From positions 186,001-250,000 of the forward strand of contig CDRNST010000031.1 of NCBI GenBank assembly GCA_977016875.1: 64,000 nucleotides of DNA, in the 5' to 3' direction. This document shows positions 12,375 to 48,110 of the stretch, piece by piece. The notes under the pieces were generated by a model. That model worked only from the letters and a program-made list of their open reading frames with translations. It was not told where the DNA came from and searched no databases. Source of the DNA: Pavona decussata (lineage: Eukaryota). The translations under genes and the position numbers were made by a program. Position 1 is the first letter of the stretch. Every line of letters begins with the position of its first letter.

Positions 12375-13931
12375 ATGAGTTCCAAGGTAACATGTTTCTG
12401 TGTTTCTTTAATTTTCAGTTACGTTACGTTTACATACAGATGCTTAAGTATATATTTTCCTTGATATAAACTTACCTTTTTGAAGGCCTTCAGCAAGTAA
12501 GAAACTTACCTGATTATATATTCCATCGTTACCTTAACAGCGGGAAAACAATTTCCCCTTTATACCAAAACATAGTGACAAATAGCATAGAATGAAATTT
12601 ATTATTTCTTGTGAGGGTAAAAATTCATATTTTCACTGATCATTAACACATAATCTGACCATGTATGTCTGGTACCCAATGCGATTATGAAGTAAAAAAC
12701 AAACATGAATTGTATCAAACAATCACAAAATTGGTTCTCAGCAACAGTTCCAATTCATCTCTTCGAAAACTGTTTATTTTTCACATTTATTTTCTCGTTC
12801 AGTTTTTGTTTAAATTTAACGAAAGTAAAACTCGCTTAAAAGGGAGAATTAATGGAACTGCTTACAAAAATTTGACTGGTTGTTTACAAACCGCTAAACC
12901 GCAAATATTGTCTTTCTCTTTGGCAGGAAACCACTGAAATGAGTTTTTTGAAAATTAAAGCAGTGCGTCTGGATTGTAAAGAACACTCTCGGCAAGCCGA
13001 CGAGAATGGTAACCTTGCCAACCAGGAGGATTTCTCTTGTTTCACAGATGATGGGAACGAAAGTAGAGAGCAGCAAAGAAAACTTAAACTATTGAGCGGC
13101 GAAAAGTTTTGGCGGGTTCCAAAGCAAGTTCAATTGCACGTCGAAAACAAGCCAACGAATATGTCGCCAAAAGCAACGAGTTCGAAAACAAGTTTACCTT
13201 CTTTTCCTAAGCTAGTAAGGTCATTAAAGAAAGATGACAACAAGATAGATTTCGGGGAAAATGGAACACAAACGGAGAAAAGGCGTTCAAGTTCGGCGCC
13301 GGGAAGTTCTAGATCTTACCCGCAAGCTAGAATAAGGAAACACAAAATTCGACTTCCGAATATCCCTGATCTGCGATCGTTGTCAATAATTGAAAAGCAG
13401 CCTATGAAGAGTTTTGTGGTGGAAGGAAAAAAGCTTGGATCGGCAGGTGATCTTAGTGAATTTTCTTCTCCAGATTCAAACGATAACGACAATGGTTTTA
13501 CAAACAGCGAGTCAAAAGTTATCGATGAAAATCCCAGCAAAACCCAAACAAAGAAAATGATAAGCGCAGAAAACACTAATGGCAAGAACGAATACGGGAA
13601 GGAACGTTGCTATGGAGACGCATGCGAAGACTTGTGTCCGTCAATCAGGAAAACTGAATTTCGTGTGAAGACAGCTTACGCTAACTCCAGCAGAAAGTTT
13701 AACACTTACCTGCAATCAAGATTCGGAAAAAGCGTTTATGAAGGCATCCACAAAAAGATAGGCACGGACCCAGGTAAAAAATATCAAGTTTATTGGGCAC
13801 CTGTGCTGATAAACAAGAAGGTCCTATATAACCGCTCTGATGCTGCGGTTAGAACGCAGGAAAACTGCGAAGATGCACGCCCAACCAAAGAGGGAAAAGT
13901 TAACTATGGAAGGGTGAAAGCCTCAGCGTGA
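12375..13931 (+). CDS. Uncharacterised basic low-complexity protein (cluster gene 1), about 334 aa
   Basis: 330-aa ORF at 12939-13931. A 12-nt micro-exon ATGAGTTCCAAG|gtaaca (12375-12386) splices in frame to the acceptor tttggcag|GAA at 12927, giving MSSK-ETTEMSFLK. Motifs RSSSAP and IRLPNI. Confidence 0.7.
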
Positions 13932-14249
13932 ATTTTGCAGACGTTTCACGCATTAGGACCGTTTAAACGAGCGAAATAAGTCAAGAGCTTATCTTAAATG
14001 TAATCATTTGAAACAGACCATTAATATATCATGTTCATAAAAAGTGTTTATTGATCATTTCCACTGGCACTGAACTGAAAATAAACAAGGGTGGATTAAC
14101 GTGAGAGCAAACGTGGAACAAACTCAGCGGTTCCGCTCTTACCAAATTGTTTCCCTAACCTGTTTAGGATCCAGGCATTCTTTCAAGAAATGTTCGCTAA
14201 AAGGCATCTTTACCTTAAGAAAAATGAAATGTTCTGCATGTGGCGAGGA

Positions 14250-14350
14250 CGGAAAAATTTCTTAGTCCCCAGCGGGAATCGAAACCATGACCTTTCGACC
14301 CACTGAGCTACAGGAAGACTCGTGGAGGATCATCAGGTTCGATTCCTTTC
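14250..14350. repeat. tRNA-related SINE fragments
   Basis: GGGAATCGAAACCATGACC and CACTGAGCTAC are reverse B-box/A-box-like; GGTTCGATTCC is a forward B-box. Truncated. Confidence 0.45.
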
Positions 14351-15955
14351 GAAGATTCTTATCCTATTTACTGTTTATTTCTTGTCTGTTGCAAAATATC
14401 ATCGTCGGTATTCATTGAATGACGATTTCATCTCTTTAATGCTTGTAAGTCTGTTTCTTTTTTTTTTATTTTGTAAGTTCTCAGAATTCCTGTATCATTA
14501 CTGACTGTTTAAACAATATATCGTTAATGATTTAATAAACGCATCCACTCTCTTACTAAAAGGCGCCCAGCATCTTTGCCACTCCTCCGCCCCCCAACAC
14601 TAGGTTCGGTCCTGTCTCTCCTAAACATCTTGTATCTAGTAAATGCCCTTGATAAAATACAGTCACATCAAGTATATCGAAAAAATGGAAGGTTTACATG
14701 TAGTACGCTTACCACAAACCTGCTCCATATAGAAGGGAAAGATACAAATTGTAAGGTAGAATTTATTTAGAGGACGTATTCAATAAACAAATGCTACAGG
14801 ATTGTTTGTTTCTTTCTCTTGCATAACGCTCGAAGAAACGGAATAGGAACCTTTTTCTACTAAATGCTCTTTATTTCATAAACGCCCCCTTTACAACAAA
14901 AATATTTAATTAAACAATCGGGTTACCATTCAAGTTATTTTACAGTAAACAAGTAAAGTAAACGTTGTTATGATTCACAATTTAATGACCTTAATATATT
15001 CAGCCTGGTCAATATCAGGGAGACCACATGAAAGGATAGTAGGACGTAGGAAATTGGAGCAAATGTTATTAGGGGGATTTTTCAGCCAATTTATCCCCCC
15101 TTTCCCCCCCCCCCCTCCCCCGCTCATGGGGATCGTCGAAATTTAAAAAGGAGTATGTAAGGGATGTAGAAACTTTTCAAAATTTATCACTGCCTCGTGG
15201 ATTATTTCATGGCAGCGATTTTCAGCCTTCATGGCTCTTATCCAAGAGTCTGGATAGGGGAGCTGGAATCTCAGTTATCATTTTAATTTTCGGCCATTTC
15301 TCACCCATCAGGTAAAACCTAAGCCACTTCTCTCCTATCAGCTAATTTATGGGTTCCTGTTCTCAGGTTTTGATTTAAAAACCCAGTATGGTATTTCTCA
15401 GCTTAGCCGAGCACTAACCAAAGTTTTAATTGATCTGTTAAACCCCTTCAGTACCAGCTTCTGTCAATTTTATACCAGCTTACAAACTGATATGTTCAGA
15501 AATACAAAGTTTGTCATCGAAATGCCTCCCCAGGAATAGGCTTTATTTACTCCGGCTGCCCTGATGCTATTGTATCAATGATTTACAGGCATGTTTTATT
15601 TCAGTGAGTACTTAATTCTGTTTTATACATCACACCCTAGAAAAAACGGTAACTAATATAAACATACTGTCTGACGTTCATAAAATGTATATGTCGCCTA
15701 AACTCACACAAATGTTGATCTTTTTGATCGTTCAATATAGCAATTACCCTCAAAAGCGTTTTTTGTTGTTTTTTCTAATGTTGTTGTCCAGATGTTTTTA
15801 ACCCATTAGTGTCGAGGGATAATTTGCCATTTTAATCAGGCCAGCTTTGAAAATTTCTGAAGAATTCGAGAAATTGGCTGAGAAATGTCTTTTTACCAAG
15901 TTGGCGGTTGGATTCACAAACTTTCTTCTCACATACTTAACCTGATGAACGATTT

Positions 15956-16747
15956 TCACGGTAACACCGCGCCAGAACTTGCCGCCCTCAAACGAAATCG
16001 CGTTTCAGCAAGGCTAATGGACGACTTGCACTTCTCCTTTTTGTAGAGTTCTTGCCTTCCAACCATCAAAGAGGTGTGAATGTTCCACGAGTCCTGTTTG
16101 GCGGGAATTGAGCGTGAAGGCTCTGATGCACGGCGCATGGTTTCCCGCCACAAATCTTGTCTATATATTGGTGGAAGTTGCTGCGAGCGAGCGGCGTTTT
16201 CCCGGCAACTATAATCGTCGTCTTCTTGAACACGAAGAGGAAAAACCTGTAAAATCTCGTCAACCTTGTTGTCTGGAGAGCTCTCTCTACGAGAAACAAG
16301 GTCCTTCTCAGAATCGTCAAAATCTGAGCTAGGAGGCCTCCTTCCATTGTAAGTTTCTTGAAGCGTTGGTTTCCCTGATGAGCGCGGAATCCAGTATTGT
16401 GATGTTGAATCGCGGCAAAAATCTCGTGGGAATTCCAATCCTTTTTCGTCCGGCTTAAAAGGCACAAGCCTTGAAACAGGAACACAAAGAGAAACTCGCG
16501 GCTTTCTTAGCTCTTCTTGCTTTTTTAGTGTTTCTTCGAGGACTTGTTTTGGTTTCTTTCGTGTTTTTTGTAAAACATTTTTCTCCTCTGTCGAGGTGTC
16601 ATCGCTTGAACCTTCATTGTCAGCTGCAGCAGCCGGCAAATCGTCGATGTTGATATTTCGTTCCTTCACTTCTCTGATGGCGTCTTCATAAAGTTTTTGC
16701 GTTCTTTTCTCGCTCCGGGAAGGCTTAGGCTTCCTTCTCCTACCCAT
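15956..16747 (-). CDS. Uncharacterised basic protein (cluster gene 2), 263 aa
   Basis: Single ORF starting at ATG, with a putative 5'UTR intron at 16759-16932 (cag|gtaagt ... cctag|). Motifs QLPPIY, RRASEP, RRESSP. Confidence 0.72.
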   Translation of the reverse strand: MGRRRKPKPSRSEKRTQKLYEDAIREVKERNINIDDLPAAAADNEGSSDDTSTEEKNVLQKTRKKPKQVLEETLKKQEELRKPRVSLCVPVSRLVPFKPDEKGLEFPRDFCRDSTSQYWIPRSSGKPTLQETYNGRRPPSSDFDDSEKDLVSRRESSPDNKVDEILQVFPLRVQEDDDYSCRENAARSQQLPPIYRQDLWRETMRRASEPSRSIPAKQDSWNIHTSLMVGRQELYKKEKCKSSISLAETRFRLRAASSGAVLP

Positions 16748-17156
16748 GCTTAAAATTCCTAGGTTAAGAGAATAATAATTTTATAACGAAAATAAACAAC
16801 GCTTCTTCTGCAATTATATTAGACATTTTTTTCAAATAATCGACCATAATGCACTCCTGTGCAAAGACAGCCCAAGGGCATATAAATAATTCAGATATGA
16901 TAAAAGATATTTTTACTAATAGTTAAACTTACCTGCCTCGTGAAAATGATACGATAACAAATCTTTCGTCTAAATACGACCACGTTTTGTTTAAATTTCC
17001 ACTGTTTTTCAATTGTATCTTTCTTAAACAAAACTCAGAAAGCCTATTTGGCGCAAGCAGGTGTTGGAAGTTGACAGTAATAGAAAATATGATTGAACAG
17101 ACAGCGCATGCGCTCTGTTCAGGTTATTTCCGAAGAGCCGGTTTGGTGAAGGTATT

Positions 17157-17164
17157 TGACGTCA
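17157..17164. promoter_or_regulatory. CRE palindrome TGACGTCA upstream of cluster gene 2
   Basis: Perfect 8-mer about 225 bp upstream of the putative first-exon donor. Confidence 0.35.
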
Positions 17165-19381: not shown

Positions 19382-19393
19382 GTCCTTGGCAAC
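19382..19393. promoter_or_regulatory. RFX X-box-like site
   Basis: GTCCTTGGCAAC, upstream of a putative 5'UTR exon (intron 19520-19789) of the 19879 gene. Confidence 0.45.
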
Positions 19394-19878
19394 GTGAATT
19401 TCATCATGAATATTTGGTCTGCAAAATTGGTTTAGCTCTTGTTGACTGCGTTCGTGAATGTTTGTAATTCACATGTTCGCAAGATAAACAACAGTTTTAA
19501 AACAGCAAGTCTACAGGGAGTATGTTATTAAAGTTTTATTTGTTTTTCCAGCCCTGAACACGTTAAGCATAAACTACAGTTTGTTTTCCGCCAATAATAA
19601 CATTTTGTTTTCGGGTTATGTTGATAGTTCGCTAATTAAAAACTGTTAAAATTATTACCATAACTCAAAAGACAGACATCAACACCACAAAAAAGCTTCA
19701 TTCTTAGAGAAAAATTCATTGGTCGCCAAACAGTGTTAATTCATTCTGACCGACCTAGAGCTGTTACTAAACTGTTTTCTTGTTAATAGGTGCATTGTTT
19801 TCGCTAAGATTTTGAACAATAGCTTCTAAACGAAAGTATATTAATCCCTCCCGCGAAGACATAAGTGTATTAAGAAAT

Positions 19879-20823
19879 ATGGCAATACAGACCAGACGAA
19901 ATGTTACTGCAATGCAGTTAGACAAAGCAGAAGGTTCCTTTTTTCCGCTTATTCCTCACGTTACACCAATTTGGCCGCCGGATAAGCGCATCGAAAAGAT
20001 GAAGCCGAGAAGATCTACGTATTGGAGGCTTGTCCGCAACAAAATGATCGTCCTGAGATTTCTTCAAAGCATAAATCCGACAATTACAGATTTGTTTCCT
20101 AAAGTGCTGGATGAAGAGGAAAGCGGGAGCAATATTGTTACTCTGACGAAGAACTTTCGAGAAGAGCAAAGGAAAAAATACGAACGCGTTTACGAGATTC
20201 AGATGGAAGCATATCTTAGGGAAGAAAAGAAAAAAAGCATTTGGGAAAAGGTTCGAGACTGTGAATGTGCTACTCATGAATGGAGAACGACGAGAGAGAG
20301 TCTGGCGACTAGGAAGAGAAATTCAACAAACGTAACAGACAGAACTCGAGCGACTGCGAAAATTGATCTTTTGGGCGAACACGACATTCAAACTGCTAAC
20401 AGCAACGAGAACGATACATCATCGAAGACACAGCAAAAGAAATACAAGGCTCAGACATTCAGAAGCCTGAAGGAAGATTTTGGTCTTCCAGTAAAAACTG
20501 ACGAGATTTATTTGCCTCAGATATATGGAAGGAGAAAGGGGGCGAAACGACCAATGAACGACCCTCGCTTTCAAAGGCTGTTAGATGCACTCATTCCTCC
20601 CCAAGACAAAAAAGAAGAAGATTTTGGGACTAGCACGGATAAAAGTCGCAACAAGACCACTGCAGAGATGGAAACTGTTTCAAGAGGCAGATTAAATGGA
20701 AGGAGTTTGCACGAAAAATGGAAGGAAACCACCGCACCGATGAATATTCGCAAGAATTCAATGCCCAACAGTAAACAGACTAAGTTTACTCGGCCAATAG
20801 GTGGGCTGGGGCACTCGATTTAA
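19879..20823 (+). CDS. Uncharacterised DPRF-motif protein (cluster gene 3), 314 aa
   Basis: Long ORF with aatATGG start. Motifs VTPIW, YWRLVRNKMIVLRFL, YLPQI, NDPRFQRLLDALIP, RKNSMP. Confidence 0.82.
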   Translation: MAIQTRRNVTAMQLDKAEGSFFPLIPHVTPIWPPDKRIEKMKPRRSTYWRLVRNKMIVLRFLQSINPTITDLFPKVLDEEESGSNIVTLTKNFREEQRKKYERVYEIQMEAYLREEKKKSIWEKVRDCECATHEWRTTRESLATRKRNSTNVTDRTRATAKIDLLGEHDIQTANSNENDTSSKTQQKKYKAQTFRSLKEDFGLPVKTDEIYLPQIYGRRKGAKRPMNDPRFQRLLDALIPPQDKKEEDFGTSTDKSRNKTTAEMETVSRGRLNGRSLHEKWKETTAPMNIRKNSMPNSKQTKFTRPIGGLGHSI

Positions 20824-23800: not shown

Positions 23801-23908
23801 TATTTAAGTAATTAAATCGACTTTTAAAAGTTTGCATTTAAACGGTACAATAATGACGTTTACAAAGAGGGATTACTGAACAACGAAAATAAGGATGAGA
23901 GGGATTTG

Positions 23909-23916
23909 TGACGTCA
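23909..23916. promoter_or_regulatory. CRE palindrome TGACGTCA upstream of cluster gene 4
   Basis: Perfect 8-mer about 115 bp upstream of ATG 24030. Confidence 0.4.
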
Positions 23917-24029
23917 TTTGACCATCTGCAGTGCACGTACGCAAGTCAATAAAAGGCCGTACTGCATATCCAGTTATAATCAGCGTTTGATGGAGTTTGA
24001 AAGCTAAGTTGCGTAATCAGTCCTTTAAT

Positions 24030-24749
24030 ATGGCTGAGTTACCAGATTTGAAACCCGTAGTGAGTATTACACCCATTTGGAGAAGGAGAAAGAAGAGAAT
24101 AACATCGTTTAAACAAGCGGCCCTGATGGTTGTCCACTTAATGCGGCTTGGTGCACACACACGTTTGTCAAGTCTTACTGTTGAAACTATGGCGGAGCAA
24201 CTAAAAGAACTCGCTAACGAAGATCAGGAGAAGGAGGAACGGATAAGGAAGGTACAGCGCCTGGCCAAGATTAAAAAGAAAGAAAATGTTGAGCTTGAAG
24301 AATGGAAGCAACACTACTTGAAGATATACAGGGAAAAGTTTCATCGTCTCACGCTGTTCGAGAAAATGAATCGGTACAATGGAAATCACTGGATGGAAAA
24401 AACCACAAACAATGCAACTTTAATGCCTTTTGGTATTGAAAACACAAAACTCGCAATTGGGAGTCCTACGTTTATGATGAACCAAAAACTTGTCACTGAA
24501 CGCAAAGCAATCACACCAGCGCCGAGATCTTGGCTGGCTGAAGATTGCGTGCTGAAACGATCCGATGAAATTGTTCGTAGGATAGCTGTGGTGCCTCATC
24601 AAGCGGACGGAAGACTTAACAGTGGCCATCAACTGACGAATGGTTCAACAAAGGACATTAAAAAGAACCTCCAAGTCACTTCGCTTGGCGGAAAACATGA
24701 TCCAAGATTTCAAAAACTATTACGCTCACTAACACCCATTGGATCCTAG
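24030..24749 (+). CDS. Uncharacterised DPRF-motif protein (cluster gene 4), 239 aa
   Basis: The first ATG is at 24030 (the track start at 23997 is TTG). Motifs LPDL, ITPIW, FKQAALMVVHLMRL, HDPRFQKLLRSLTPI. Confidence 0.82.
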   Translation: MAELPDLKPVVSITPIWRRRKKRITSFKQAALMVVHLMRLGAHTRLSSLTVETMAEQLKELANEDQEKEERIRKVQRLAKIKKKENVELEEWKQHYLKIYREKFHRLTLFEKMNRYNGNHWMEKTTNNATLMPFGIENTKLAIGSPTFMMNQKLVTERKAITPAPRSWLAEDCVLKRSDEIVRRIAVVPHQADGRLNSGHQLTNGSTKDIKKNLQVTSLGGKHDPRFQKLLRSLTPIGS

Positions 24750-27592: not shown

Positions 27593-27764
27593 ATGACCGG
27601 CAGACTTGATTAGTTCAGAAACTGTACCCTTTGAAAAAGCAACTAGCAAAAGTGTATCTTCCAATGGATGGGTCAGATTTTCCGTGTGCCTATTGGTAAG
27701 ACCAGTGCAAATGTAAACGCAACTTTAAAATGAATGCATCACTTCAAACTCAGCTCAGGCTTTG

Positions 27765-28060
27765 GTGATGTTTATTGTGCTTTCCATAAGTGTTTTAACT
27801 TTTCAGTCCGTAAATGAAATTCTTAAGTGTGACCATTCAAATGAAAGCTGCTTAGCAGTACTTTCCTGTGGTGCTGTTTATTGTGCTGTACAAGGTGGCT
27901 CTAAATTTTGAGTCTGTGGGTGAAATCCTGCAGTATGTCCATTCCAATGAAAGCTACTGAGCAGTACTTTCCTCTGGTGCTCGGTTTATTGTGCTTTACA
28001 AGGTGGTTCTAACGTTTGAGTATGTGGACAAAATTCCCTAATGCACGTGGCCATTCAAAG
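27765..28060 (+). repeat. ~107-bp tandem satellite-like repeat, about 3 units
   Basis: Recurrent CCATTC(A/C)AATGAAAGCT...GCAGTACTTTCCT...GTTTATTGTGCT. Confidence 0.8.
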
Positions 28061-28215: not shown

Positions 28216-28848
28216 TTACCCCTTGTGAAAATCTGCGTTTCCCTTGTTCATTATTTTGAACACTAAACGGCAAGTGTCGTTGAGGCAAATGTCTTTAAAA
28301 CAAATCTCATCCCATTTGTCGTAGGCTTTTCTGTTAGAATCCACTAACTTATTTCTATCCGCGTGAAGATGAGTTCGTAAAGGAACAAGTCGCTCAAGCA
28401 GACGTGTAAATCTTGGATCTTGTAACGGATTCCTGTCATAAAGGTAAGTGGATCGATAACCTTGGCGTTCAGTTTGAGTTGCCGATTCGAATTCAAGATT
28501 ACCTTTGTTTGACTCAGTTTTAGTCCATGCAATCTTCTTTACTTCTCCTTCTTGGTTGAGTTGTGGTTCATTATTATTCTCCGTTTCCCTGTCAGAACAG
28601 CACTCCTGACAAACTTGAGAATCAACCAATCCGTCGTTCGTCTTAAAACTAGTATCATAAACATCACCTAAGTGTTGAAATTGTGCGATTGCTGGCTCAG
28701 AAGCGCGTTTCTTCCACGTTTGATCATTGCTGCGGTTTAATTCATTATTTTTGTCGTTTCCTTTTCGATATTTTTCTTTTTCAACTTTGTAGCCTTCGCC
28801 ATCTTTTTCCCGTATTTTCGCCAATGTCTTACCGCCTATGAACGCCAT
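28216..28848 (-). CDS. Uncharacterised DPRF-motif protein (cluster gene 5), 210 aa; possibly N-terminally truncated or pseudogenising
   Basis: ORF with KRASEP and LQDPRFTRLLERLVPL. An in-frame upstream ATG at 28896 is separated from it by two TAA codons. Confidence 0.7.
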   Translation of the reverse strand: MAFIGGKTLAKIREKDGEGYKVEKEKYRKGNDKNNELNRSNDQTWKKRASEPAIAQFQHLGDVYDTSFKTNDGLVDSQVCQECCSDRETENNNEPQLNQEGEVKKIAWTKTESNKGNLEFESATQTERQGYRSTYLYDRNPLQDPRFTRLLERLVPLRTHLHADRNKLVDSNRKAYDKWDEICFKDICLNDTCRLVFKIMNKGNADFHKG

Positions 28849-30564: not shown

Positions 30565-31077
30565 ATGAAGAACAAGAGGAGAGATGATCGATTCTGCCAA
30601 TGTATCCCTTACGGGAAAATTGAGGCGAAAAAACTAGAGCGTTTGCAAAAGAACAGGCAACGACAAATGTGTACATGGAAGGACCTTGCTCCTTTCAGCG
30701 AACGTCAAGAAGAATTTTTGGCGGCAACTGTACGGGTTAGTAACGCAACTAACAAGCCTCTTTTCCCGCCAATTCATGAACTGCCGTGTATAACAAACCA
30801 TGACACTTACAAAGCTATGTATAATACAGGGAATAGTGGTGAAATGATAGCAGACGAATTACGCTCAAACAGTGACCGGGTTGGCGAAGAAAACAGAGCG
30901 ATTTCTCAGCATTACGGATGTGGCTGTTCCTCGCTGAAAGACAATAATGTCGTGGAAGAGGAGAGTGGGTGCATGATCAGTGAAGCCAAAGGATCTAGAA
31001 ACAGTACAGAGCCACAACCGTCTAGATTAAAACTTCCGAAAATAACTAACTTTAGCTTTGTAAATCAAAGACTTTGA
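30565..31077 (+). CDS. Uncharacterised protein (cluster gene 6), 170 aa
   Basis: ORF with aagATG start. Motifs ERQEEF, LFPPI, ELPCI, LKLPKI. Confidence 0.6.
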   Translation: MKNKRRDDRFCQCIPYGKIEAKKLERLQKNRQRQMCTWKDLAPFSERQEEFLAATVRVSNATNKPLFPPIHELPCITNHDTYKAMYNTGNSGEMIADELRSNSDRVGEENRAISQHYGCGCSSLKDNNVVEEESGCMISEAKGSRNSTEPQPSRLKLPKITNFSFVNQRL

Positions 31078-32925: not shown

Positions 32926-33486
32926 ATGAATTCAGCTATAAAATTCGACCAAGAAAATGCAGATATCGAGAAGAACGAGAAAAGAATCCCCTACAGGCTT
33001 TGCTACAAGGACAGGATAAAAGTCATAAACATTCGCCCGACGAATGAAGATAAAATAATTGACACGACTCGTGATCAGCTCCACGAATCAGACTGCCCAG
33101 AAACACGAGAAGTCTTGCGAATGGCAACCGTTAACTCCGTCGATGCAATTCAAACGAGGGCGATTCACGAGCATTATGGAAATATAAAAAATCGAAGTGT
33201 TACTTCTATGGAACGACGAGCGACCTCAGGTTTATACCTTCCTTGTTTACTGGGAAATAAGGACAATATTCACGCTCCAGTGTTCAATGTGGCGACTTAC
33301 AAGGGATTTAGAACTCAAGAAGACCGAAAGTGTTGGGCTTTTACCAAGACTTTAGAACGTGATCAAAAGGAGTTATTCGGCGGGAAAGAGAAACGTTTGA
33401 CGTCGACCACAGCTGTGATAGACATCTCAAAACCAGCACAGCTGCACTCACGGTACGCCATCTTGCATCCAAAGAGCGCCACGTGA
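32926..33486 (+). CDS. Uncharacterised protein (cluster gene 7), 186 aa
   Basis: ORF with gccATG start and a CCAAT box at about 32750. Motifs RRATS and LYLPCL. Confidence 0.55.
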   Translation: MNSAIKFDQENADIEKNEKRIPYRLCYKDRIKVINIRPTNEDKIIDTTRDQLHESDCPETREVLRMATVNSVDAIQTRAIHEHYGNIKNRSVTSMERRATSGLYLPCLLGNKDNIHAPVFNVATYKGFRTQEDRKCWAFTKTLERDQKELFGGKEKRLTSTTAVIDISKPAQLHSRYAILHPKSAT

Positions 33487-34114: not shown

Positions 34115-34123
34115 TGATGATGC

Positions 34124-36082: not shown

Positions 36083-36769
36083 TATATCAAAAAAGCAAAC
36101 AAATTGTTGAAATTTTTGGAATAATTGCATTCACATAGGCCATGCCATAATTAATAGCCTGTTCCAGGTATTCAGGAGCGAAGAAAATTGCGATGCGAAA
36201 GAATAATTAAAGCGACGAGACCATCCTTCTCGTTTATTAGCCCCGCTCACAATATTTTTCTCCACTCCCTGAAAGCTAGGCTACTGAAGAAATCTCAATA
36301 TATTAGTCATGAAGAAACGGAAAAAAAACGGCGTTTGATTGAATATATTTAGTAATAAAAATCAGCGAAAAATCAAGCGACGTTTTGATATCATCAGTGC
36401 CATCATTATCTAGCTAGGACAGAAGGCCGGCCAAAAGCATGTACGTCATCAGAACTTAACGTATGGGAAAAAGTTGACAACAAATTGCGTGCATAAATGG
36501 AATAAAGTAAGATTAGGTGAAGATAAAATAATTGTTTTAATAATAAAAGTGTTCGTCACAACGTCGTAAAAGTGTTAGAAAGTCTGTAAATAAATTGCGC
36601 GTGTTAAGCAAATAAATTAGCACGGATTTCGCTGAGTTTTACTCATTAAATGTAATCATTTCGAAGTTTATTCCTCCGAAAACCGTTGTGATCATAACAA
36701 TTAAAGAAACCCACACGCGAGTTCTCTATAAATTACAAGGTTTAAGCTTAGGTTTTAATTAAAACTTGG

Positions 36770-37681
36770 TCACTTCCAATGTCTCGTAAACACGGTAGTT
36801 TTTCTTGCAATCTCGTTATCGGTTTTCTGCAACTGGGATATCTTTCTCCGGTTCTTGTCACGGACTTTCATGACAACATGGTAAAATTTAGGATCTCTGG
36901 GATTTAAGTGAGGGATTTTAGCGGGATCAGGCATTTTTATAACCTTTTGGTAAGTAACTCCGCGAAACGTCCTTGTGTTCCAGGATGTGTCGTTCTTGGG
37001 AGCTTTTTCTTGATTCCGATTCAAGTTTTTCTCACGAAAATTTTCTCTGTCTCTTTTTAATTCTTCCTCTTCCAACAAGAACGGAAAACAGCTTCCAGCG
37101 TAAGCGTTTTTTCTCCTCCGATTAAGCCGAGTAACCCACGAGTTGTCATCGATTTCAACCGCGGCGTGCAAAGGCGGCAATGGTGCTCCTATGGAAGTTT
37201 TTCTGTTGTTCTCTGAAATAATATTAAACGTTTTCTCTTTACTCTTAGCCGTCAAATTTAAGAGCATTTGTCTTTTTACCTCAGTGATTGACTCCCTTCG
37301 ACCTTTCAGCCACATTGGTGTTTGATCCAAAACAGAGGCGCGTTGCCTCCCAATTTCCTCCCTCCCAACCGGCTTCACCTCGACTGCCTTCTTCTCTTCT
37401 TGTGCTAAAGGAGGCAGAAACTTCGATAATGATCTCTTTTGTGACTCCTTGAAGTCTCGCTGTCTTTTGTTGCATTCATTGGCAACTCGTCTCTGTTCGC
37501 GTGAAATAACACTTAAGTTTATCTCTAATTCTTTCAACAGGCCAGCGTTGGTGTGGCTCGCATGTTTCAATCCGTACTTGTTCGCGATTTTAATCTTGCT
37601 TCGTTTTGGAAGATTGCGAATTCTAATAAGTTCCTGATTGAGTCGCTCGTCTGCGTTCCTTCTTGCCGCTTCAAAATCCAT
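36770..37681 (-). CDS. Uncharacterised coiled-coil/DPKF protein (cluster gene 8), 303 aa
   Basis: The first ATG is at 37681 (aaaATGG; the track start is TTG). Motifs NAGLLKELEINLSVISREQ...RQRDF, FLPPL, PLPPL, RDPKF. Confidence 0.8.
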   Translation of the reverse strand: MDFEAARRNADERLNQELIRIRNLPKRSKIKIANKYGLKHASHTNAGLLKELEINLSVISREQRRVANECNKRQRDFKESQKRSLSKFLPPLAQEEKKAVEVKPVGREEIGRQRASVLDQTPMWLKGRRESITEVKRQMLLNLTAKSKEKTFNIISENNRKTSIGAPLPPLHAAVEIDDNSWVTRLNRRRKNAYAGSCFPFLLEEEELKRDRENFREKNLNRNQEKAPKNDTSWNTRTFRGVTYQKVIKMPDPAKIPHLNPRDPKFYHVVMKVRDKNRRKISQLQKTDNEIARKTTVFTRHWK

Positions 37682-37896
37682 TTTGACGATAATTAGAAAA
37701 GACCGTTTATAGAACAACCAACACGATCCTGGATAATCCAAAGTATTTTAATCGCGTGAAAACAATATTTGAGAAACTTGCCACAAGCACGGAGTCAGGT
37801 AAAGTTACAGCCCCCATTTCGTGTCAATCTCATATGGTTATAAGTGTTGCAGTGCCACTATCTTAGTGTTAGTCCTTCCAGTTGACCGTATTTCAA

Positions 37897-37910
37897 GTTG
37901 TCTTGGTCAC
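37897..37910. promoter_or_regulatory. RFX X-box-like site
   Basis: GTTGTCTTGGTCAC, about 215 bp upstream of ATG 37681. Confidence 0.45.
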
Positions 37911-38789
37911 CTCAGCGAAGATAAATCAATTTGCTCTGCAGAGCAACAGGCCGTAATTGAGTGACTCAGTTCGACTCAGTCCAAGGATCGAGATTAAGTG
38001 CGAAAATAGAGTGAAGTTACCTCAAATACACGCTCACAGAAAGTTTCGTTTTGCAGTGGTTTCGCAGTCCTCTGGTTTCGGAGATTGTAGACCAACGCAC
38101 GTAATATTCAGTTTTGTGTGTGTTTTTCTGTTACAATGCCTTCCGTAGCCTTAAGCCATGCACCAGCAGTACTCAACAATGCGCGAACAGACACAAAGAC
38201 TAACGACTGGCGGCCGAAAACCGCTGACGCAAATATCACCTTGATATAAATCACAGTATAAGATGTCGCTTTGACAGTTTGGACCGCAACAGCGACAACC
38301 TTATAGCTTAGCACTTAAGTGTCGAAGGACAAGATGGGACCACTGATCTCGGCGTCGTAGAGGGAAACAATCAGGTAAATATTAAAAAACACCGTCAAAC
38401 AGCGGTGTTTATGTGGCTTTGTCCCATGGCTTACATGATATTGTGTTTTATTGTCCGGTTATTGGATAGTAGGGCGACAAATCTCAAAAGTTGTTTGCTC
38501 GATAATAACAGTGCGGGTTTCATATGCAAATACGTGTGTAGTGTATAATACGCATCAGGTAAACATTGTGCGTTTACGTACCACTCGTGAAATATAAATG
38601 CAATATTTGTTTGCGGAAAAATCTGATGACCAAACGTGTTTTTAATACCACTCAGCTAGCACTAAGTGTGTGGATACATAGGTGCGTCTGATTGGCGCGG
38701 CTTTCTCTAGTTCTCCAGACTCGATCGAGGCAGTTAAAAATTAAACGAAAAGCTGTCACTATCTTATGAAAGTGTTGTCCGATAGGCCC

Positions 38790-39370
38790 AGTTCAAGAGT
38801 CAACTGCTCAGTAATTTCGTTTGAATGGTAACACAGTTAGGATTTCATTCACAGACTTAAAAGTTAGAACCTTGTACCACATAATAAACAGCACCACAAG
38901 AAAGCAGCTTTCATTCGAATGGTCACACTTTGGGATTTTATCCATCAACGGAAACTGGCGGTTAGTACCACCTTGAACAGCAGATCTAGACGGCTCAACT
39001 GCTCAATGGCTTTCATGCGAATGGTTAAACCACATTGTACAATATGATAAACACCACCACAGGAAAGTACTGCATACTCCACCGTATTTACAAACTGCTA
39101 GCAGTCTTTCTTTTTACCTCAGATACTAGACGCAAGCGGAAATCTAGAAATTATCCAATGAATGGTCACACTTTAGGATTTCATTCAGAGGCTCAAAAGT
39201 TAGAACCACGTTGTACTAGTATAACACAGGCATACAGCAGGCAGCGCAAAAAAAGCTGCCGCCTGCTTTAAATTTACATGTACTTTAGGGCCTTCATTTG
39301 AATCGGTTCATTGGCTTCAGTTTGAGTAGAATTTCATCCAAAGGCTCAAAAAATACTTTTAACCACGTTG
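38790..39370 (-). repeat. Decayed array of the same satellite as 27765-28060, reverse orientation
   Basis: Recurrent GAATGGTCACAC, GGATTTCAT, CAGCACCAC and GGAAAGTACTGC. Confidence 0.7.
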
Positions 39371-40950
39371 TTGAGTCGCAAAAGATTAAAAGCTCGACAG
39401 GAAAGAAAATCATTTTCCATACAAAACAAATTACATGAATAAAGGGAGAAAAGCCGAAAGTTTGGTTTTAAATTTATTGTCTTCGGTTCCTGTGTCACTG
39501 TAATTATAATTTTATCTGGTATACCTTTCTAGATTATTTGTTTTACCTAAAAGCTGTTTGTTTTGGTACTTTAGGCAGTGCTGAAATGGAATAACTTGAG
39601 CATCAGGCCTTCGTTAGGGGAGGGGAGGAAAATACAAGCAGGGAAGGCATAATTATAAACCCTATTTTCGATTTTATAGATATATTAGAGACTGAAACTG
39701 GAACCGGCGCCGAAGACTGAAACCATTCGGCCGTCAGAACTGAAAAACATCGCCGGAAAAAAATCAAACATAAGAGAAAGATACAGAGTAAATTGGAGAG
39801 GAGATGGTAGAATCTTTACTAAAGCCGGATCAGCGTCCCCAGTTAGCTTGGAATTACTTCGAATCCGCCCTGACCCTCTTACGTTTATACACTGATCTAT
39901 TTGTTGCTAGCAGCTGGGTCAGCTTAACTCTCCATAGATTATCACCTAGTTAGTAACAATCTTGAAGACCAATGCAAAAAGATGAGACTGGTATCTCGTT
40001 TCTGTAATCCAATTCTTTCCAACGACCCTTGCTGAGTCTCTCTCCTTCTCTGCCTATCTCTCCTCCCCTATGTTTTTGTTTTTCCCTCTCCGTATGCGTC
40101 CTACCCAGCCTGATCCCACGACTCACCCCACTCCCCAAGAAAGAAGCATTCTTAATATTGCAAACCATATGCAAGAACAACGGGAAGTAAATTTGGCTCT
40201 GCTTGACTCCCATGCAAAGTGCACCATCTTTCTTTGTTGGATTGTTCTCGAATGTAGATTTTCCAGAATTACTGCAAAATGCCACGCGAGACAGCCCACC
40301 GCGCAGCTGACAAATAGGTGTTTATGAAAAATTCGCACTTAGTTAAAAACAAATAAAAAGGTCGAGTTTTTTTTCACATGGCTAGCGAACTATTTAAGAC
40401 ACCCATTTGAACTTTGTTCTTTAGGATTCAAATTCCTGGTGTGTTGAAAGAAAGAAAGAAAGCTAAGTCATCATTAATGCATGTTAATCTAGGATTCTCG
40501 CGGGACCTGTTAAACTGAAAGAGCCTTTAGAAATGTAAATTATGTCACAATATATATTCAAAACAAAGACCGAGACAAACAAATCGACGGGTATATTTTA
40601 TTAGGGCTTTATTCATCACTTTTAAAGAAAGATATTTATCGTCGGATATCCGATCTTTATAAGGAAACGCAAAAATTTTAAAAACGCTTGAGAGGCTGAG
40701 CGATCAAGAGTTTGTCAACGCAACGTTGGTTTTTGTATTCATAAACCTCTAGACAGAAGGATTGGGTTTCGTAATACAACAACAAAACGGAAAGCAATTT
40801 GTCACTCGTATCCACTAATGCGGGACGGAATTCGAAGATTTTAGCGAAGTTGGATTGTTGGGTCTGTGGAAGGGATTTTGGCTCGTACACGCAAGCTGTT
40901 ATAGACGAATCGAGACCGATTTTTACTTGTTTAAAGGACATTTATTGAAG

Positions 40951-41730
40951 ATGAGTGTTAGTTCTTCAAGGTGTCCACTGATTCGAATCAGCAAAACTGG
41001 CGAAATGAGGCTCAAAAACAAAGTTGGAAACGCAATACTGAAAGAGAACGCGTACGAAGACCGCGCTCTGAACACAACGCTGGACACCCTATCTAGACAT
41101 CAGTTCAGGCAGGATAAATACATGACTTACAGGCAGCTAGAGTTTGCCACGAAGCAGGTCTCCGCTTCAGAAGAGAGACCTAGGACAATGAATATGGAAA
41201 GTAAACATTCTCAATCTAGCGAGCAGAGTTTACCTCCCATAGACTCACTGCGAAGGTCGAATGTAGTGGCTCCGAATATGGAGGAAAGACGTTCAAGTCA
41301 CACCGCAGAGGCGGGAGGGAACAATAAGGCGAAAGGACGGTGGGAAAAGGCGATAACTCTTGTTCGACTAGCAGTACAGAACAGACCGGCTAAAGACTCC
41401 AGTGGCAAGGCTACAACTCAGCATAGAAAAATCTCTGGAATTCATGAGATACATTCGAAGGACATGAACGCGAACCAACTGCCCCCAATAAACCCTCGTT
41501 GCGAAGGAGGACCCAGAGAACCTTCTTCTGTAAAGGGACCCCTGCGAAAACAGCCGAGTTTGCCAGAAATGCTTAAGGTTTCGAGGGAAAAATCGCAAAA
41601 CGGCCTCAAGGATCCTAGGTTTATGAAACTAGAGCAGTGTTTGAGCGAAACGAGGAGTGCACGTGACGGAAAACATCGAAAGAATTCAAGAACGAATCCA
41701 CTGCATGACAGAATTCGTTATACGCGCTGA
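40951..41730 (+). CDS. Uncharacterised coiled-coil/DPRF protein (cluster gene 9), 259 aa
   Basis: The first ATG is at 40951, just after a putative acceptor (tttacttgtttaaag|). Motifs NAYEDRALNTTLDTLSRHQ...RQLEF, SLPPI, RWEKAITLVRL, QLPPI, RKQPSLP, LKDPRFMKLEQCL. Confidence 0.83.
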   Translation: MSVSSSRCPLIRISKTGEMRLKNKVGNAILKENAYEDRALNTTLDTLSRHQFRQDKYMTYRQLEFATKQVSASEERPRTMNMESKHSQSSEQSLPPIDSLRRSNVVAPNMEERRSSHTAEAGGNNKAKGRWEKAITLVRLAVQNRPAKDSSGKATTQHRKISGIHEIHSKDMNANQLPPINPRCEGGPREPSSVKGPLRKQPSLPEMLKVSREKSQNGLKDPRFMKLEQCLSETRSARDGKHRKNSRTNPLHDRIRYTR

Positions 41731-44394: not shown

Positions 44395-44970
44395 TCATTT
44401 GTCAAGTGACCTCTTAGGCAGGGGCCTGTCAAGCAATAATCTGCCATCATTGTAATTCCACTGCTGTCGCTTCACAAATGCGATCATCTGAGGTGGTGCG
44501 TCCGGGAATAGTGTGTCATTTGCCGAATTAACTGGAAGAGGTTTGACAGCCCAACACGGCCGCGGAGTTGTACTGTTAGCGGCCTTTCTCCCACAACCTA
44601 ACGAAATGTCAGAATGTTCGCGAAGATCTCTGCTGTTAGACGCCGTTTTGGCGCGGATTTGAACTGTCTTCAGCTTCTCCTGGTTGAGATTAAACGGCCG
44701 TACTCGATGCAAGTAACCCATTCGAGTGTGGTTCTTCCGAAGATCGGGCAAAAAAGCTTCGATAAGTTTCTCTCTGTTGTGTTCGCTCATTAGCGACATG
44801 TCAATCTCTGAGCGGCATGATTTAATGCGTCTAGAGTCTGGAGAATTTGTCGATGAATTCCATGAAGAGTGTGTTTTTCGAGTCCTTGCAGGCTCTGATT
44901 TTGTCCTGGATATGTTGTGACTTCGTGATGGAGGTGAAGACGCTTCAAAACGTTCGCGATTCAAGTCCAT
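44395..44970 (-). CDS. Uncharacterised basic Ser/Arg-rich protein (cluster gene 10), at least 191 aa
   Basis: ORF with agcATGG start; the frame stays open up to a putative acceptor at 45035. Motifs RTKSEP and FLPDL. Confidence 0.62.
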   Translation of the reverse strand: MDLNRERFEASSPPSRSHNISRTKSEPARTRKTHSSWNSSTNSPDSRRIKSCRSEIDMSLMSEHNREKLIEAFLPDLRKNHTRMGYLHRVRPFNLNQEKLKTVQIRAKTASNSRDLREHSDISLGCGRKAANSTTPRPCWAVKPLPVNSANDTLFPDAPPQMIAFVKRQQWNYNDGRLLLDRPLPKRSLDK

Positions 44971-45340
44971 GCTTCCAACTGTTGTGTAATGTTTGGTTGA
45001 AACCTTTGCACACTGATTCGGTTGTGATTGATGTCTGTTAATATAAACTTAGCAATTAATACTATACCATATTAATCCAGAAGTTTTTGAAAGACAGATC
45101 CACTTGTAGAATGAGAGCACAAAACTGTACAGCACAAACGGACACGAGAAAGAAAGTTGTTCTTAACTGTTGTTTGTAATCGTATCGTAAGTTGACAGTT
45201 CCAGTAGAGACAAAGAAGGTTTTTACGCTTGAATAAATTATTAACCATTACTGGTTGACAACGTTTATTGTTTACCGAAAAGAATACGATCTGTTTATCA
45301 TTATAATTGATTTACATAGCGCTTGTCTGATAGCTAGTTT

Positions 45341-45353
45341 GTTGCTAGGATAC
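45341..45353. promoter_or_regulatory. RFX X-box-like site
   Basis: GTTGCTAGGATAC, about 370 bp upstream of ATG 44970. Confidence 0.5.
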
Positions 45354-46189
45354 CATCTGTCTGGGAGACTGGAAGATCACCGAGTAACCTCGTTCCCAGG
45401 ATCCCTCTTTTATCTTGCCTAAACCAAATTAGTTGAGTGCCTTCGATTTGCGGTATTCGGGTACAAGAATACAATAAGAATACATACATTAACGTAACAT
45501 TAATTATCAAAAATCCTTCAAAACTGGCTTTTGGAATTTTTTAGAATACAAAATGGGCCTTAAAGATCGTATGCTAGCAAAAATTAGCAGATATGTTTTC
45601 ACGCAAATTTACCAACAGAAAGCTAGAGGGCTGTTCGATCCCGTTCATGATTCTTATTCCGGAATACGGTTAATTACAAAATGGCTCATTTTTGTTACAA
45701 CGCGACGGTGCCATCCTTTCGACTGTGTCTTGTTTCGGTTTACCACGGTTTGATTTTCTTTTGTGTCCCTGGCATTTTTTTTAGGTGTGCTAACTAGAAA
45801 GCTTTTGCATAGGTTGTTGGTGCTCAATACATCGAAAAGATTCTGTGCCATTCAAAGAAAAGAGATCTGGTAATGTAGTTTCTTTGCAGTGCTTTCTCCT
45901 ACCTTCTTATTTAGTAGGTACATAAGTTCTATCCGTTCGCCATTGTTACAGTCAGCAGATCACAAATTTCTAATTTCTTTTTTGTTTATAAGTTTTGGGG
46001 GATCGTTACTGACTCTACAATATAGCAGTCTTTGCTGCATGTTTTCGGTAAATTCCATCCACTTCAGAGGAAAGAAAAAGGATAGACCCTGTGCTGTCAG
46101 CTAAAAAAGGGCGCCGGTCAATGCGCCATCAAGAGCAAGACCCGACAGAACAGGTCGCGGCGACCCGACCTTGACTTGAGCGCGTTTTC

Positions 46190-46430
46190 TATCGTTGGTA
46201 CTGGTTGACGGTTTTCCCGCGCTTTGGCACTGGTTGTATGTTTTCCCGCACTTTGGCACTGGTTGTATGTTTTCCCGCGCTTTGGTACTGGTTGTATGTT
46301 TTCCCGCGCTTTGGCACTGATTGCATGCTTTTCCTCGTTTGCTACTGGCTGCATGGTTTCCCGCGCTGGTTCCGTTTGCTGAGAGTCACTTGCTTCGGCG
46401 TTTCGGACATGTTTTCCCTCGCTTGACACC
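46190..46430. repeat. 29-bp tandem array derived from the dispersed repeat family
   Basis: Unit GGTTGTATGTTTTCCCGCGCTTTGGCACT, about 4 clear units plus degenerate ones. Confidence 0.85.
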
Positions 46431-46535
46431 ATCTTTAGCTTTGGCAGCGATGTCAGTGGTTTACTGTTTCATGATTGAGAAGATGAGATTAATTCAGTAA
46501 GGCATATTTTTTTGACATTCATCAGTAAAAAACAT

Positions 46536-48110
46536 CTAACAACGAAAAACTATTCTATCAGAAATCCCATAACGAAAATATAATGGCGTCATTGGGTTTC
46601 TAGGGGTATTCAACGGCTTTGAGTCCTTATCTGGAACTGCATTCTTGGAATTCTTCAAGTTCACTGATTTGTGTTCGATCTGCAGAACGTCCGCGAAACC
46701 CTTCATGATTTTATCAAATTCCGTCCACATCCACCTTTCATGGGCTGACTGAGTTTGTGCTTTCTTCGTGTTTGCTTCTTGCATTTCTGTTCGGGCTGGA
46801 CTAATTGGTCCTCCGCTCACACGAGAAATCCTGCTCCCTGATCTTCGTGATGAGGCTTCCGAACCTGCTTCAGACCCAAGAGCTGAATGCATTCTACTAT
46901 TATGTTCTTTAGTACTTTCAGAAAATTCATTGTCAGGATCAGTTTCTATAGTTTTCTCCATGCGGCTTTGTCTAAAGTCTTTTGAACTCTTTGCGCTATG
47001 TCCGCCTTCAATTAGATTCTCTCTTTGTCCCGTCGGCTCAACCACAACGAAGTTGCTTTCAAATGAATTCCTGTTACCGCTACCTACATCCTTCGACGGC
47101 GTTATCTGAACACTAGGTGTCTTGGCTGTCATTTGCCTTTGTTTTCCTGCCACGTCTCTTTTTCCCGCCACATATGACGCCCGTGACGAACTCAAATTTA
47201 CAACACCGAGTGTTTTGTTCCGTTTTCCCGCCACAGATGACGCCCGTGACGAACCTCCAACGCAGAGTCTTTTGTCCCTTTTTCCCGCCGCAGATGGCGC
47301 CCGTGACGAACTCAGAGCTGCAACACCGAGTGTTTTGTCCCGTTTTCCCGCCACAGATGACGCCCGTGACGAACTCCGGCTCAAATCTGCAAGGTTAAGC
47401 CTTTTGTTCTGTTTTCTTGCCACAGATGGCGCCCGTGGCGAACTCAAAGCTTCAACGCTAAGCCTTTTGGTCTGTTCTCCCGACAAATTACATTTTTCCG
47501 CTACAGATGACGCCCTTGACGAACTCGAAGCTGCAACGCTGAGTCTTTTGTCCTGTTTTCCAGACAAATCGCGTTTAAAATCCTCGACATTTGAAATCCT
47601 CGACAATGTTACCTGGATTTTTGGCCTCGTGGGGGTGGTCATGTCGCATCTTCCCGCCGAATCGCGTTTTCCTGCCACCAAGGAGGAGCGTGAGGGACTC
47701 AAAGAAGCAAAACTGAGGCCCGTACTCTCATGTTTTTCATCCTCGGTTTCACCCATATTTTCATTTCCAGGCGTTGTACTCGTTGGACCTACTTTTGTCT
47801 CCTTTTCAATCATATCGCGACTTTCACGACGAATTTTCCTCCTGTTTTTTTCCTGTTTAAGCATAGCATTACGTGCGCGCTCCATTTCAGCCAGTCTCAG
47901 TTTTCTTCCTTGTTCAATTCGGTTATTTTTTTCTTCTAAATCGCATTTCAAAAACGAATTTCTGTACCTGGCGAAGTGGGCCTCGCGACGAATTCTTGAA
48001 AATTTACTGAGATGAAGCTGCCTTGTTTCTCGACGTAGACGGTCTGTAGTGAAGTCATCACCGATTAAAAAGTTGCCATCCTCAGAGTAGACCCGGCGAG
48101 ATGTCGACAT
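46536..48110 (-). CDS. Uncharacterised coiled-coil and Ser/Arg tandem-repeat protein (cluster gene 11), 524 aa
   Basis: Long ORF with aaaATG start. N-terminal helix NSFLKCDLEEKNNRIEQGRKLRLAEMERARNAM, then about 6 internal SSSRASSVAGKRDKxL repeats. Confidence 0.82.
   Translation of the reverse strand: MSTSRRVYSEDGNFLIGDDFTTDRLRRETRQLHLSKFSRIRREAHFARYRNSFLKCDLEEKNNRIEQGRKLRLAEMERARNAMLKQEKNRRKIRRESRDMIEKETKVGPTSTTPGNENMGETEDEKHESTGLSFASLSPSRSSLVAGKRDSAGRCDMTTPTRPKIQVTLSRISNVEDFKRDLSGKQDKRLSVAASSSSRASSVAEKCNLSGEQTKRLSVEALSSPRAPSVARKQNKRLNLADLSRSSSRASSVAGKRDKTLGVAALSSSRAPSAAGKRDKRLCVGGSSRASSVAGKRNKTLGVVNLSSSRASYVAGKRDVAGKQRQMTAKTPSVQITPSKDVGSGNRNSFESNFVVVEPTGQRENLIEGGHSAKSSKDFRQSRMEKTIETDPDNEFSESTKEHNSRMHSALGSEAGSEASSRRSGSRISRVSGGPISPARTEMQEANTKKAQTQSAHERWMWTEFDKIMKGFADVLQIEHKSVNLKNSKNAVPDKDSKPLNTPRNPMTPLYFRYGISDRIVFRC
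47140..47570 (-). repeat. Coding minisatellite, units of about 63-78 bp, frame-preserving
   Basis: CAGATG(A/G)CGCCCGTGACGAAC recurs about 6 times. Confidence 0.9.

Follow-up and report, generated by a model that had tools for sequence, protein, structure and literature searches.

Micro-syntenic blocks conserved among metazoans join unrelated genes whose order and orientation have been kept for a very long time, with conserved non-coding blocks between them. Lineage-restricted families of disordered proteins that act through short linear motifs (SLiMs), for their part, are of low complexity, basic and free of domains, and conserve only short motifs or helices while the sequence between these diverges fast. 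Both descriptions fit a locus in the 602-Mb genome of the stony coral Pavona decussata, where 11 genes (g1 to g11) lie in an array within the 64,000-nucleotide stretch analysed here (C31:186001-250000, C31 being contig CDRNST010000031.1; hereafter the window). The locus departs from described micro-syntenic blocks in consisting of small, intron-less orphan genes packed closely together instead of a developmental regulator and its bystanders, and in that no shared regulatory motif was found in it; it departs from described disordered families in that no member or motif matches a catalogued family or motif class. An earlier note on the window had read the 11 genes as a single tandem family, old and quick to diverge, of disordered scaffolds built from shared motifs, plausibly expressed in cilia or sperm.

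A conserved array of intron-less orphan genes

The most notable result is the array itself, in which densely packed, unrelated, intron-less orphan genes are kept in order and orientation across Hexacorallia. It is a micro-syntenic set of 11 genes with a PDZ/EF-hand gene on its left and an ankyrin/RVxF gene on its right. Stony corals share its order and orientation, as does the anemone Nematostella for g3, g5, g7-g11 and the ankyrin gene. On Desmophyllum pertusum MU825398 the PDZ/EF-hand gene is followed by g1 to g10, all in the same order and orientation, and Pocillopora meandrina CALNXJ010000029 likewise keeps g2(-) g3(+) g4(+) g5(-) g6(+) g7(+) g8(-) g9(+) g10(-), at 29-72% protein identity. 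Both g1 and the PDZ gene are missing at the Pocillopora site, where TMEM107 and an ATP10 gene lie on the left. Nematostella vectensis DS469539 reads g3-like(+), g5-like(-), g7-like(+), a mucin-like gene, g8(-, one intron), g9(+), g10(-), g11(-) and the ankyrin gene; g4 was not detected in the Nematostella DNA examined. The two flanking genes, between which the earlier note had proposed to look for synteny in other corals and Nematostella, are thus both found in place, the PDZ/EF-hand gene beside g1 in Desmophyllum and the ankyrin gene beside g11 in Nematostella. A more distant metazoan contig (L010) carries a g9-like gene 3 kb from a g10-like one, and the 272-residue gene between them gives its best alignment, a weak one, to the N-terminus of g8. 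Because the order is kept in Nematostella and the pair is kept on L010, the block existed before corals and anemones separated, roughly half a billion years ago, and g9 and g10 were linked even earlier.

The 11 open reading frames (ORFs) have 170-524 codons, use both strands, and lie between 12.9 and 48.1 kb of the window with a spacing of 1.6-3.5 kb. They stand where the earlier note had placed them, and its general description of them held. Coding is intron-less for all 11 in the window (the Nematostella g8 has one called intron), the orientations are mixed, and the products are all basic (isoelectric point 8.1-10.5), largely disordered and rich in Lys, Arg and Ser (22-34% together). None of the 11 proteins has a Pfam match or falls in a described family, and a hydrophobic-segment check found no transmembrane or signal segment in any of them. 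There is no DNA similarity between the genes, the sole internal repeat being a 63-bp repeat in g11. For g4, g8 and g9 the start codons are internal ATGs (24030, 37681 and 40951), as the ortholog alignments show.

Each of the 11 genes has full-length orthologs in other corals. For g3, g9 and g10 there are dozens of full-length homologs apiece, all unnamed or 'uncharacterized' and with no precomputed Pfam domain, in Acropora, Montipora, Pocillopora, Oculina and Desmophyllum and, for g9, in Nematostella too. Codon alignments against coral orthologs gave nonsynonymous divergence (dN) of 0.16-0.60 with saturated synonymous divergence (dS), and hence dN/dS of 0.08-0.33 over the 8 genes where the ratio was computable. 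By blastn, collinear conserved non-coding blocks lie directly upstream of g1, g3, g7, g8, g9 and g10 and between g5 and g6. The block upstream of g3 (19454..19878), a promoter or 5' untranslated region, is 66-67% identical to Desmophyllum and Pocillopora, and its alignments continue into the g3 coding sequence; that between the divergent pair g8/g9 (38142..38606) is 70% identical over 491 bp in Desmophyllum and 180 bp in Pocillopora; and upstream of g10 (44971..45303) the Desmophyllum alignment reaches 45301, with more blocks shared with Pocillopora. Comparison with the coral loci by blastn revealed no further conserved coding segment besides the 11 genes. Finally, colinear contigs in four RNA-like runs from four studies extend from ~40633-40843 through g9 past 42400. 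The intergenic DNA beside g9 (39455-40636) has zero coverage in these runs and therefore serves as an internal control for RNA; the runs are guessed to be RNA, and as assembled contigs they do not give expression level, strand or exact ends. Full-length collinear orthologs, low dN/dS, conserved promoter-proximal blocks and the g9 contigs together show that the 11 ORFs are real protein-coding genes. As the earlier note had supposed, ortholog alignments and synteny show the genes to be old and fast-evolving, with short motifs as their best-conserved parts.

Several of these genes are poorly represented in existing annotations. The Pocillopora meandrina g10 (L004:18953-19516) is present and has no annotation, and in the old Nematostella annotation (L008, L013) g10 and g11 form one gene model and the g3-like and g5-like ORFs are missing. 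Cnidarian genome annotations probably under-represent such small intron-less genes. The Desmophyllum orthologs of g2, g3 and g8 (L014, L009) align in two reading frames and therefore carry small introns or frameshift errors of the assembly; these genes and the spliced Nematostella g8 were compared exon piece by exon piece. The Nematostella insert between g7 and g8 (L008:3707-5656, +) encodes a 649-residue mucin-like protein, rich in Thr, Pro and Glu and with an N-terminal hydrophobic segment, which has no counterpart in the window.

The right border of the block is formed by the single-exon ankyrin-repeat gene (53261..54409, - strand), which has Ank Pfam hits and is 46% identical to the Nematostella gene at the equal relative position and orientation. 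Its protein has about four repeats and a disordered tail with a conserved RVxF-like sequence, RRKTVTF (RRRTVTF in the Nematostella ortholog). This tail and the repeats make it a candidate PP1-targeting subunit; it may act as a regulatory subunit of that kind. Elsewhere in the window, a short interspersed repeat occurs at 38667-39257 and 27763-28028. Many short, high-depth RNA-like contig pieces and joints pile up on 38.7-39.3 kb, and loose-end sequences there match the reverse complement of a 106-bp tandem unit at 27763-28028 (2.5 copies). The repeat is probably an element resembling a short interspersed nuclear element or a miniature inverted-repeat transposable element that is abundant in transcripts.

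The DPRF family and its two-part module

How far the 11 genes are related was assessed from ortholog alignments for each gene, compared all against all with hhalign; shuffled alignment columns served as nulls (mean score ~14.5, maximum 24). The strongest pair was g3-g4 (score 81, E=3e-11, 191 columns, 97% probability). Scores above the null were also obtained for g3-g5 (41.5, against a null maximum of 18.5 for that comparison), g3-g9 (34), g4-g9 and g5-g9 (29 each) and g4-g5 (27), and with two copies found on other contigs, x6 and x7 (g3-x7 48, g3-x6 42, g9-x6 32). A hidden Markov model (HMM) of g3 matched g5 with E=2e-7 among the 725 window ORFs searched. By contrast with these, all pairs that included g1, g2, g6, g7, g10 or g11 scored 10-19, which is background, and the whole-protein score of 21 for g8-g9 fell within the null. 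When N-terminal regions alone were compared, g9-x6 was strong (30.6 against a null maximum of 15) and g9-g8 was weakly above the null (16.8 against 13.7, 35 gap-free columns). An N-terminal module common to g8, g9 and g11 was accordingly rejected, as the likeness is weak for g8-g9 and absent for g11.

Because of these scores against the shuffled nulls, the array resolves into one multi-copy family and six singleton families. As judged by profile comparison, g3, g4, g5 and g9 are one undescribed family, referred to here as the DPRF family; g8 is perhaps a remote member; and g1, g2, g6, g7, g10 and g11 each represent an orphan family of their own, six in all. The claim of a single undescribed family therefore stands for g3, g4, g5 and g9, with g8 borderline, and does not extend to all 11.

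g3 (314 aa; 19879..20823, + strand) has a TPIW N-terminus, a central helix, an LPQI motif and a DPRF helix. It has 38 homologs in Acropora, Pocillopora and Desmophyllum, unnamed and lacking Pfam domains, and a g3-like ORF in Nematostella. Its C-terminal part holds a two-part module (20512..20598, +) that consists of LPQI, 12 residues and DPRFQRLLDALIP, with nearly invariant columns P213, D228-F231, L234, L238 and P240 in its ortholog alignment (A1). The tandem paralog g4 (239 aa; 24030..24749, +; 29-36% identical to its orthologs) has TPIW and a C-terminal DPRFQKLLRSLTP at 24699-24737. In g5 (210 aa; 28216..28848, - strand) the DPRF helix is DPRFTRLLERLVP, at 28381-28419, and an extra conserved Cys-rich C-terminal block follows it. 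This block after the DPRF helix (I-CF-D-CL-DTCR-[VI]F..MN) is shared by the g5 orthologs, that of Nematostella included, and is absent from the rest of the family; it might be a metal-binding site or a small folded unit.

The best-conserved member, g9 (259 aa; 40951..41730, +), comprises a long N-terminal helix, LPPI, a basic WEKAI helix, a second LPPI and an SLPEML-DPRF module at 41560-41643. It has 49 homologs, with a range that reaches Nematostella (alignment A2). A search of 1.84 billion representative proteins with its profile yielded just 14 clusters, of which the distant ones keep the full order of the modules. The AlphaFold model of g9 has a long helix at residues 24-74 (predicted local distance difference test score, pLDDT, above 90), the WEKAI helix at 126-143, and the module as two adjacent short helices (204-220 and 222-236, pLDDT 70-79); the LPPI motifs lie in low-confidence linkers. 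The borderline gene g8 (303 aa from its ATG; 36770..37681, - strand) has an N-terminal helix, two LPP[IL] motifs and a degenerate [DN]PK[FL]..VV. It is 62% identical to its orthologs, and its N-terminus is 63% identical in Nematostella.

An alignment of both subfamilies (A6) defines the C-terminal signature of the family as [LF]Px[ILM], 12-14 residues, then DPRFx[RK]LxxxL. The spacing is fixed across both subfamilies, the D, R and F and the two L positions are invariant, and SLPEML of g9 aligns with YLPQIY of g3. In g3 and g9 both halves of the module are found and are conserved among orthologs, whereas g4 and g5 of the window have the DPRF half only; some g4 and g5 orthologs carry LP-type motifs, and g8 has the degenerate version only. 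To our knowledge this LPxΦ-DPRF module is undescribed.

Searching the genome with A6 recovered g9, g3, g5 and g4 (E=5e-17 to 2e-9) together with members on C46 and C191. In all, there are at least four extra single-ORF copies on other contigs, on C150, C191 (two) and C46. These are x6 (C150), found with the g3 profile; x7 (321 aa; C191:1037209-1038174) and x8 (186 aa; C191:1027328-1027888), which lie 10 kb apart, x8 having been found by the A6 search; and the C46 member (344 aa), also found with A6. All four carry the two-part module, with LP[PK][IL] upstream of the DPRF helix. The C191 pair lies in a second array of K/R/S-rich single ORFs (C191:1008000-1047999; 402, 448, 286, 186, 321 and 233 aa). 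The other genes of that array are not paralogs of the non-DPRF genes of the window, and the neighbours differ.

The named sources of the homologs are anthozoan cnidarians only, and with no Pfam domain, solved structure or named protein among the matches, the DPRF-family proteins belong, on these searches, to no known family. Profile and sequence searches of the PDB with g3, g8, g9 and g10 returned nothing relevant. The sole PDB match of the 39-position module profile, 'PRFQRLFQCL' at residues ~480-491 of Ku80, covered 11 residues, was not significant (E ~2) and was treated as chance. A search of the Atlas with g8 gave no usable match, and a literature search found no paper on a 'DPRF motif' or on the accession or locus names of the homologs.

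Orphan genes, shared motifs and candidate functions

Outside the DPRF family, the most conserved gene is g10 (191 aa; 44395..44970, - strand), which has an invariant FLPD...PFN.N.E...KAAN..P.P.W core. Its identity is 72-76% in corals, 55% in Nematostella and 42% over 90 aligned residues on L010, where the copy lies beside the g9-like gene. It has no PDB or Pfam match, and its predicted structure shows no confident fold (mean pLDDT 52). A conserved core that lacks a confident fold and, in g9, an architecture of helices plus motifs would fit proteins that take on order only once bound to a partner or built into a larger assembly. By language-model features, the Atlas entry nearest to g10 is CIMIP4/TEX33 (score 0.83), a ciliary microtubule inner protein that, like g10, is small, basic and poorly structured. 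This candidate identity was rejected, since neither g10 nor three of its orthologs matched the Pfam model PF15400 even at E<=10 (the cut-off is 27 bits), and hhalign of g10 against the coral's own PF15400 protein gave 0.2% probability. The genuine PF15400 ORF of this coral is on a different contig (C294:111853-112098; L011:1351-2064, - strand); it encodes 237 aa, scores 30 bits, above the cut-off, and is unrelated to the array.

The other orphan genes are also single ORFs. g1 (330 aa; 12939..13931, +) has conserved RLPNI/RLPCI and RRSSSAP motifs, a dN/dS of 0.33 and a Desmophyllum ortholog of 52% identity that adjoins the PDZ/EF-hand gene. Both g2 (263 aa; 15956..16747, -), with a conserved [QH]LPPIYRQ, and g6 (170 aa; 30565..31077, +), with conserved FPPI-x-ELP-x-IT and KLPK[IL]T, have lower dN/dS (0.08 and 0.08-0.16), with identities of 59% to Pocillopora and 67% to Desmophyllum for g2 and of 53-61% for g6. 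g7 (186 aa; 32926..33486, +) is 44-60% identical in corals and 26% in Nematostella. The Ser-rich g11 (524 aa; 46536..48110, -) has none of the shared motifs, and over its first 80 residues it shares 51% identity with the gene next to g10 in Nematostella. It contains the 63-bp (21-residue) repeat in 3.6 copies (47160-47376), which generates, as a by-product, a long antisense ORF (47122-48015, +), and a 29-bp tandem repeat in 6 copies (46195-46367) lies directly downstream of its stop codon.

The motif counts of the earlier note were mostly reproduced: DP[RK]F occurs in five genes, LPx[IL] in nine, TPIW in two and RQxxF in three. RxxSxP, the pattern of 14-3-3 mode-1 ligands, which it had put in six or seven genes, occurs in four (5 sites against 1.4 expected, p ~0.02), with the RRSSSAP site of g1 conserved. 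Residue shuffles gave expectations of 0.04 genes for DP[RK]F and 1.3 for LPx[IL]. An exhaustive, unbiased count of three-fixed-residue patterns, with 200 shuffles, placed DPxF (p=1e-6) and LPx[IL] (p=4e-6) first and second, which bears out the proposed enrichment over shuffled controls. The DPxF value was reached by none of the 200 shuffles; that of LPx[IL] lies just above the most extreme null (2.7e-6) and below the 5th percentile of the null (1.4e-5). In 25-sequence ortholog alignments, LPx[IL] and DPRF..L...L show little or no variation. LPx[IL] instances are conserved in orthologs of g1, g2, g6, g7, g8 and g10, among them LPPI in g2, FPPI/LPxI/LPK[IL] in g6 and LPP[IL] twice in g8. The N-terminal LPDL of g4 is not conserved, nor is DPKF of g8 (DPKL, NPKL or EPRL in orthologs).

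Two described docking motifs resemble LPx[IL]. PP2A-B56 binds LxxIxE, and L-[SP]-P-I resembles its preferred start; however, Glu at position 6 is present in only one of the 16 LPx[IL] instances and is variable in the g9 alignment A2. The ankyrin repeats of ANKRA2/RFXANK bind a PxLPxI/L peptide (PMC12066720), so that the L-P-x-[I/L] core is common and an ankyrin-repeat gene is a conserved neighbour here; the defining Pro at -2, however, is found in 0/16 instances, and the ankyrin protein of the window is not specifically ANKRA2-like.

The suggestion of ciliary or sperm expression is not supported. When the window was scanned for X-boxes (GTTRCY N1-3 RGYAAC or a relaxed form), no enrichment was seen, with one strict site (10855, 2 kb from the nearest start; 0.2 expected) and one relaxed site inside the g1 coding sequence (0.2-0.5 expected). 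Nor were cAMP response elements (CREs) enriched: there are three full sites in the 64 kb (0.8 expected), two of them near promoters, and half-sites are at background. In the PDB searches with g3, g8, g9 and g10, no member resembled any chain of the solved axoneme structures. A ciliary or sperm role is thus without support, given the X-box and CRE results, the rejection of TEX33/CIMIP4 and this lack of axoneme resemblance.

What the array may represent

We favour, with a probability of about 0.6, the reading that the array encodes a co-regulated, anthozoan-restricted set of disordered proteins that act through short motifs and comprise one DPRF family and six orphan families. Its proteins would act via SLiMs and short helices that fold when they bind. 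One or a few folded partners would dock on the DPRF helix and on the LPP[IL]-type motifs, of which g2, g6 and g8 also have conserved copies; the long N-terminal helices may serve oligomerisation or filament binding; and joint regulation of the genes, within a single chromatin or enhancer domain of some particular cell type, would be what keeps the array together. Several observations weigh against this. Clear RNA-like coverage is limited to g9 and is thin for g8 (one run, plus a fragment in another). No promoter word common to the genes was found, the shared upstream 8-mers that are conserved in orthologs being A/T-rich only, and micro-synteny can last for causes other than common function. 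In the seven non-DPRF genes, LPx[IL] (6/7, p=1e-4) is matched by 31% of shuffled sets when it is treated as a newly discovered motif, so that it counts solely as a pre-specified test, and the instance in g10 is part of the invariant FLPD core and not a motif in a disordered linker.

It is doubtful, in our view, that the DPRF family alone is meaningful and that the rest are unrelated lineage-restricted genes, held by passive linkage or by regulatory constraint from other genes, with no common function or partner and with LPx[IL] outside the family arising by chance. Such an account would suit the 31% of shuffled sets and the missing promoter word, as well as the Pocillopora locus, where TMEM107 stands in place of g1 and the PDZ gene, and the C191 pair of DPRF genes with its different neighbours. 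It sits less well with eight genes (g3, g5, g7-g11 and the ankyrin gene) that keep order and orientation from coral to anemone, with the g9-g10 linkage on L010, with the pre-specified LPx[IL] result and the invariant LPP[IL] in g2 and g8 orthologs, and with the unusual character that all 11 share, being intron-less, basic and disordered. We regard it as unlikely that these are extended proteins bound to the cytoskeleton, such as lineage-specific partners of axonemes or microtubules, which would take on order only within a large assembly. The g10 core with no autonomous fold, the long helix and linker-borne short helices of g9 and the basic character of all members are what this would predict, and the Atlas lead to a ciliary microtubule inner protein, a weak one, points the same way, the rest being drawn from the general character of such proteins; but no PDB chain is similar, X-box sites are not enriched, TEX33 was rejected, and the phyletic range is narrow where core axonemal proteins are widespread.

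That all 11 genes are one ancient, fast-diverging tandem family of disordered scaffolds, expressed in cilia or sperm, we now consider improbable. The presence of LPx[IL] in 9/11 genes, as a top-two pattern conserved in orthologs of six genes outside the core family, would be expected of such a family, as would the single exons, basic products and similar sizes and the weak g8-g9 N-terminal likeness, and the Atlas score of g10 would fit its ciliary part. Against this, g1, g2, g6, g7, g10 and g11 stay at the profile-profile background, LPx[IL] in the non-DPRF genes fails the multiple-testing null, and the unenriched X-box and CRE sites, the TEX33 result and the axoneme comparison all tell against cilia and sperm. 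A phosphatase-adaptor module, in which the ankyrin/RVxF protein, as the candidate PP1-targeting subunit, would bind LPx[IL] or DPRF through its ankyrin groove, seems very improbable. The linkage and orientation of the ankyrin gene and its RRKTVTF tail are conserved from coral to anemone, and the ANKRA2/RFXANK repeats offer a precedent for the binding; yet Pro at -2 is absent from all 16 instances, the ankyrin domain matches the generic repeat consensus only, and adjacency alone is weak evidence.

To return to the favoured set of co-regulated, motif-bearing proteins, animals seldom keep non-homologous genes in the same order and orientation for so long, and where they do this is usually a sign that regulation or function is shared. 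A bolder form of this reading is that the PDZ/EF-hand gene, at least nine unrelated orphan genes and the ankyrin/RVxF gene form an anthozoan-specific functional module, whose products would join one complex or structure via LPP[IL]/DPRF, be switched on together and have been kept for about half a billion years. We hold this to be a long shot; if true, the module would be an animal analogue of a co-regulated functional cluster of non-homologous genes. The DPRF proteins constitute a new family of cnidarian proteins, whose two-part LPxΦ-DPRF module gives it a precise signature that can be tested. The members of the array are all uncharacterised, and several of them have been missed or mis-merged in existing annotations. 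The array also provides a co-linear gene set for tests of co-expression and of partners in Nematostella, a tractable model. If its genes are co-expressed, the block would be a compact system in which to see how disordered short-motif proteins and regulatory neighbourhoods are maintained.

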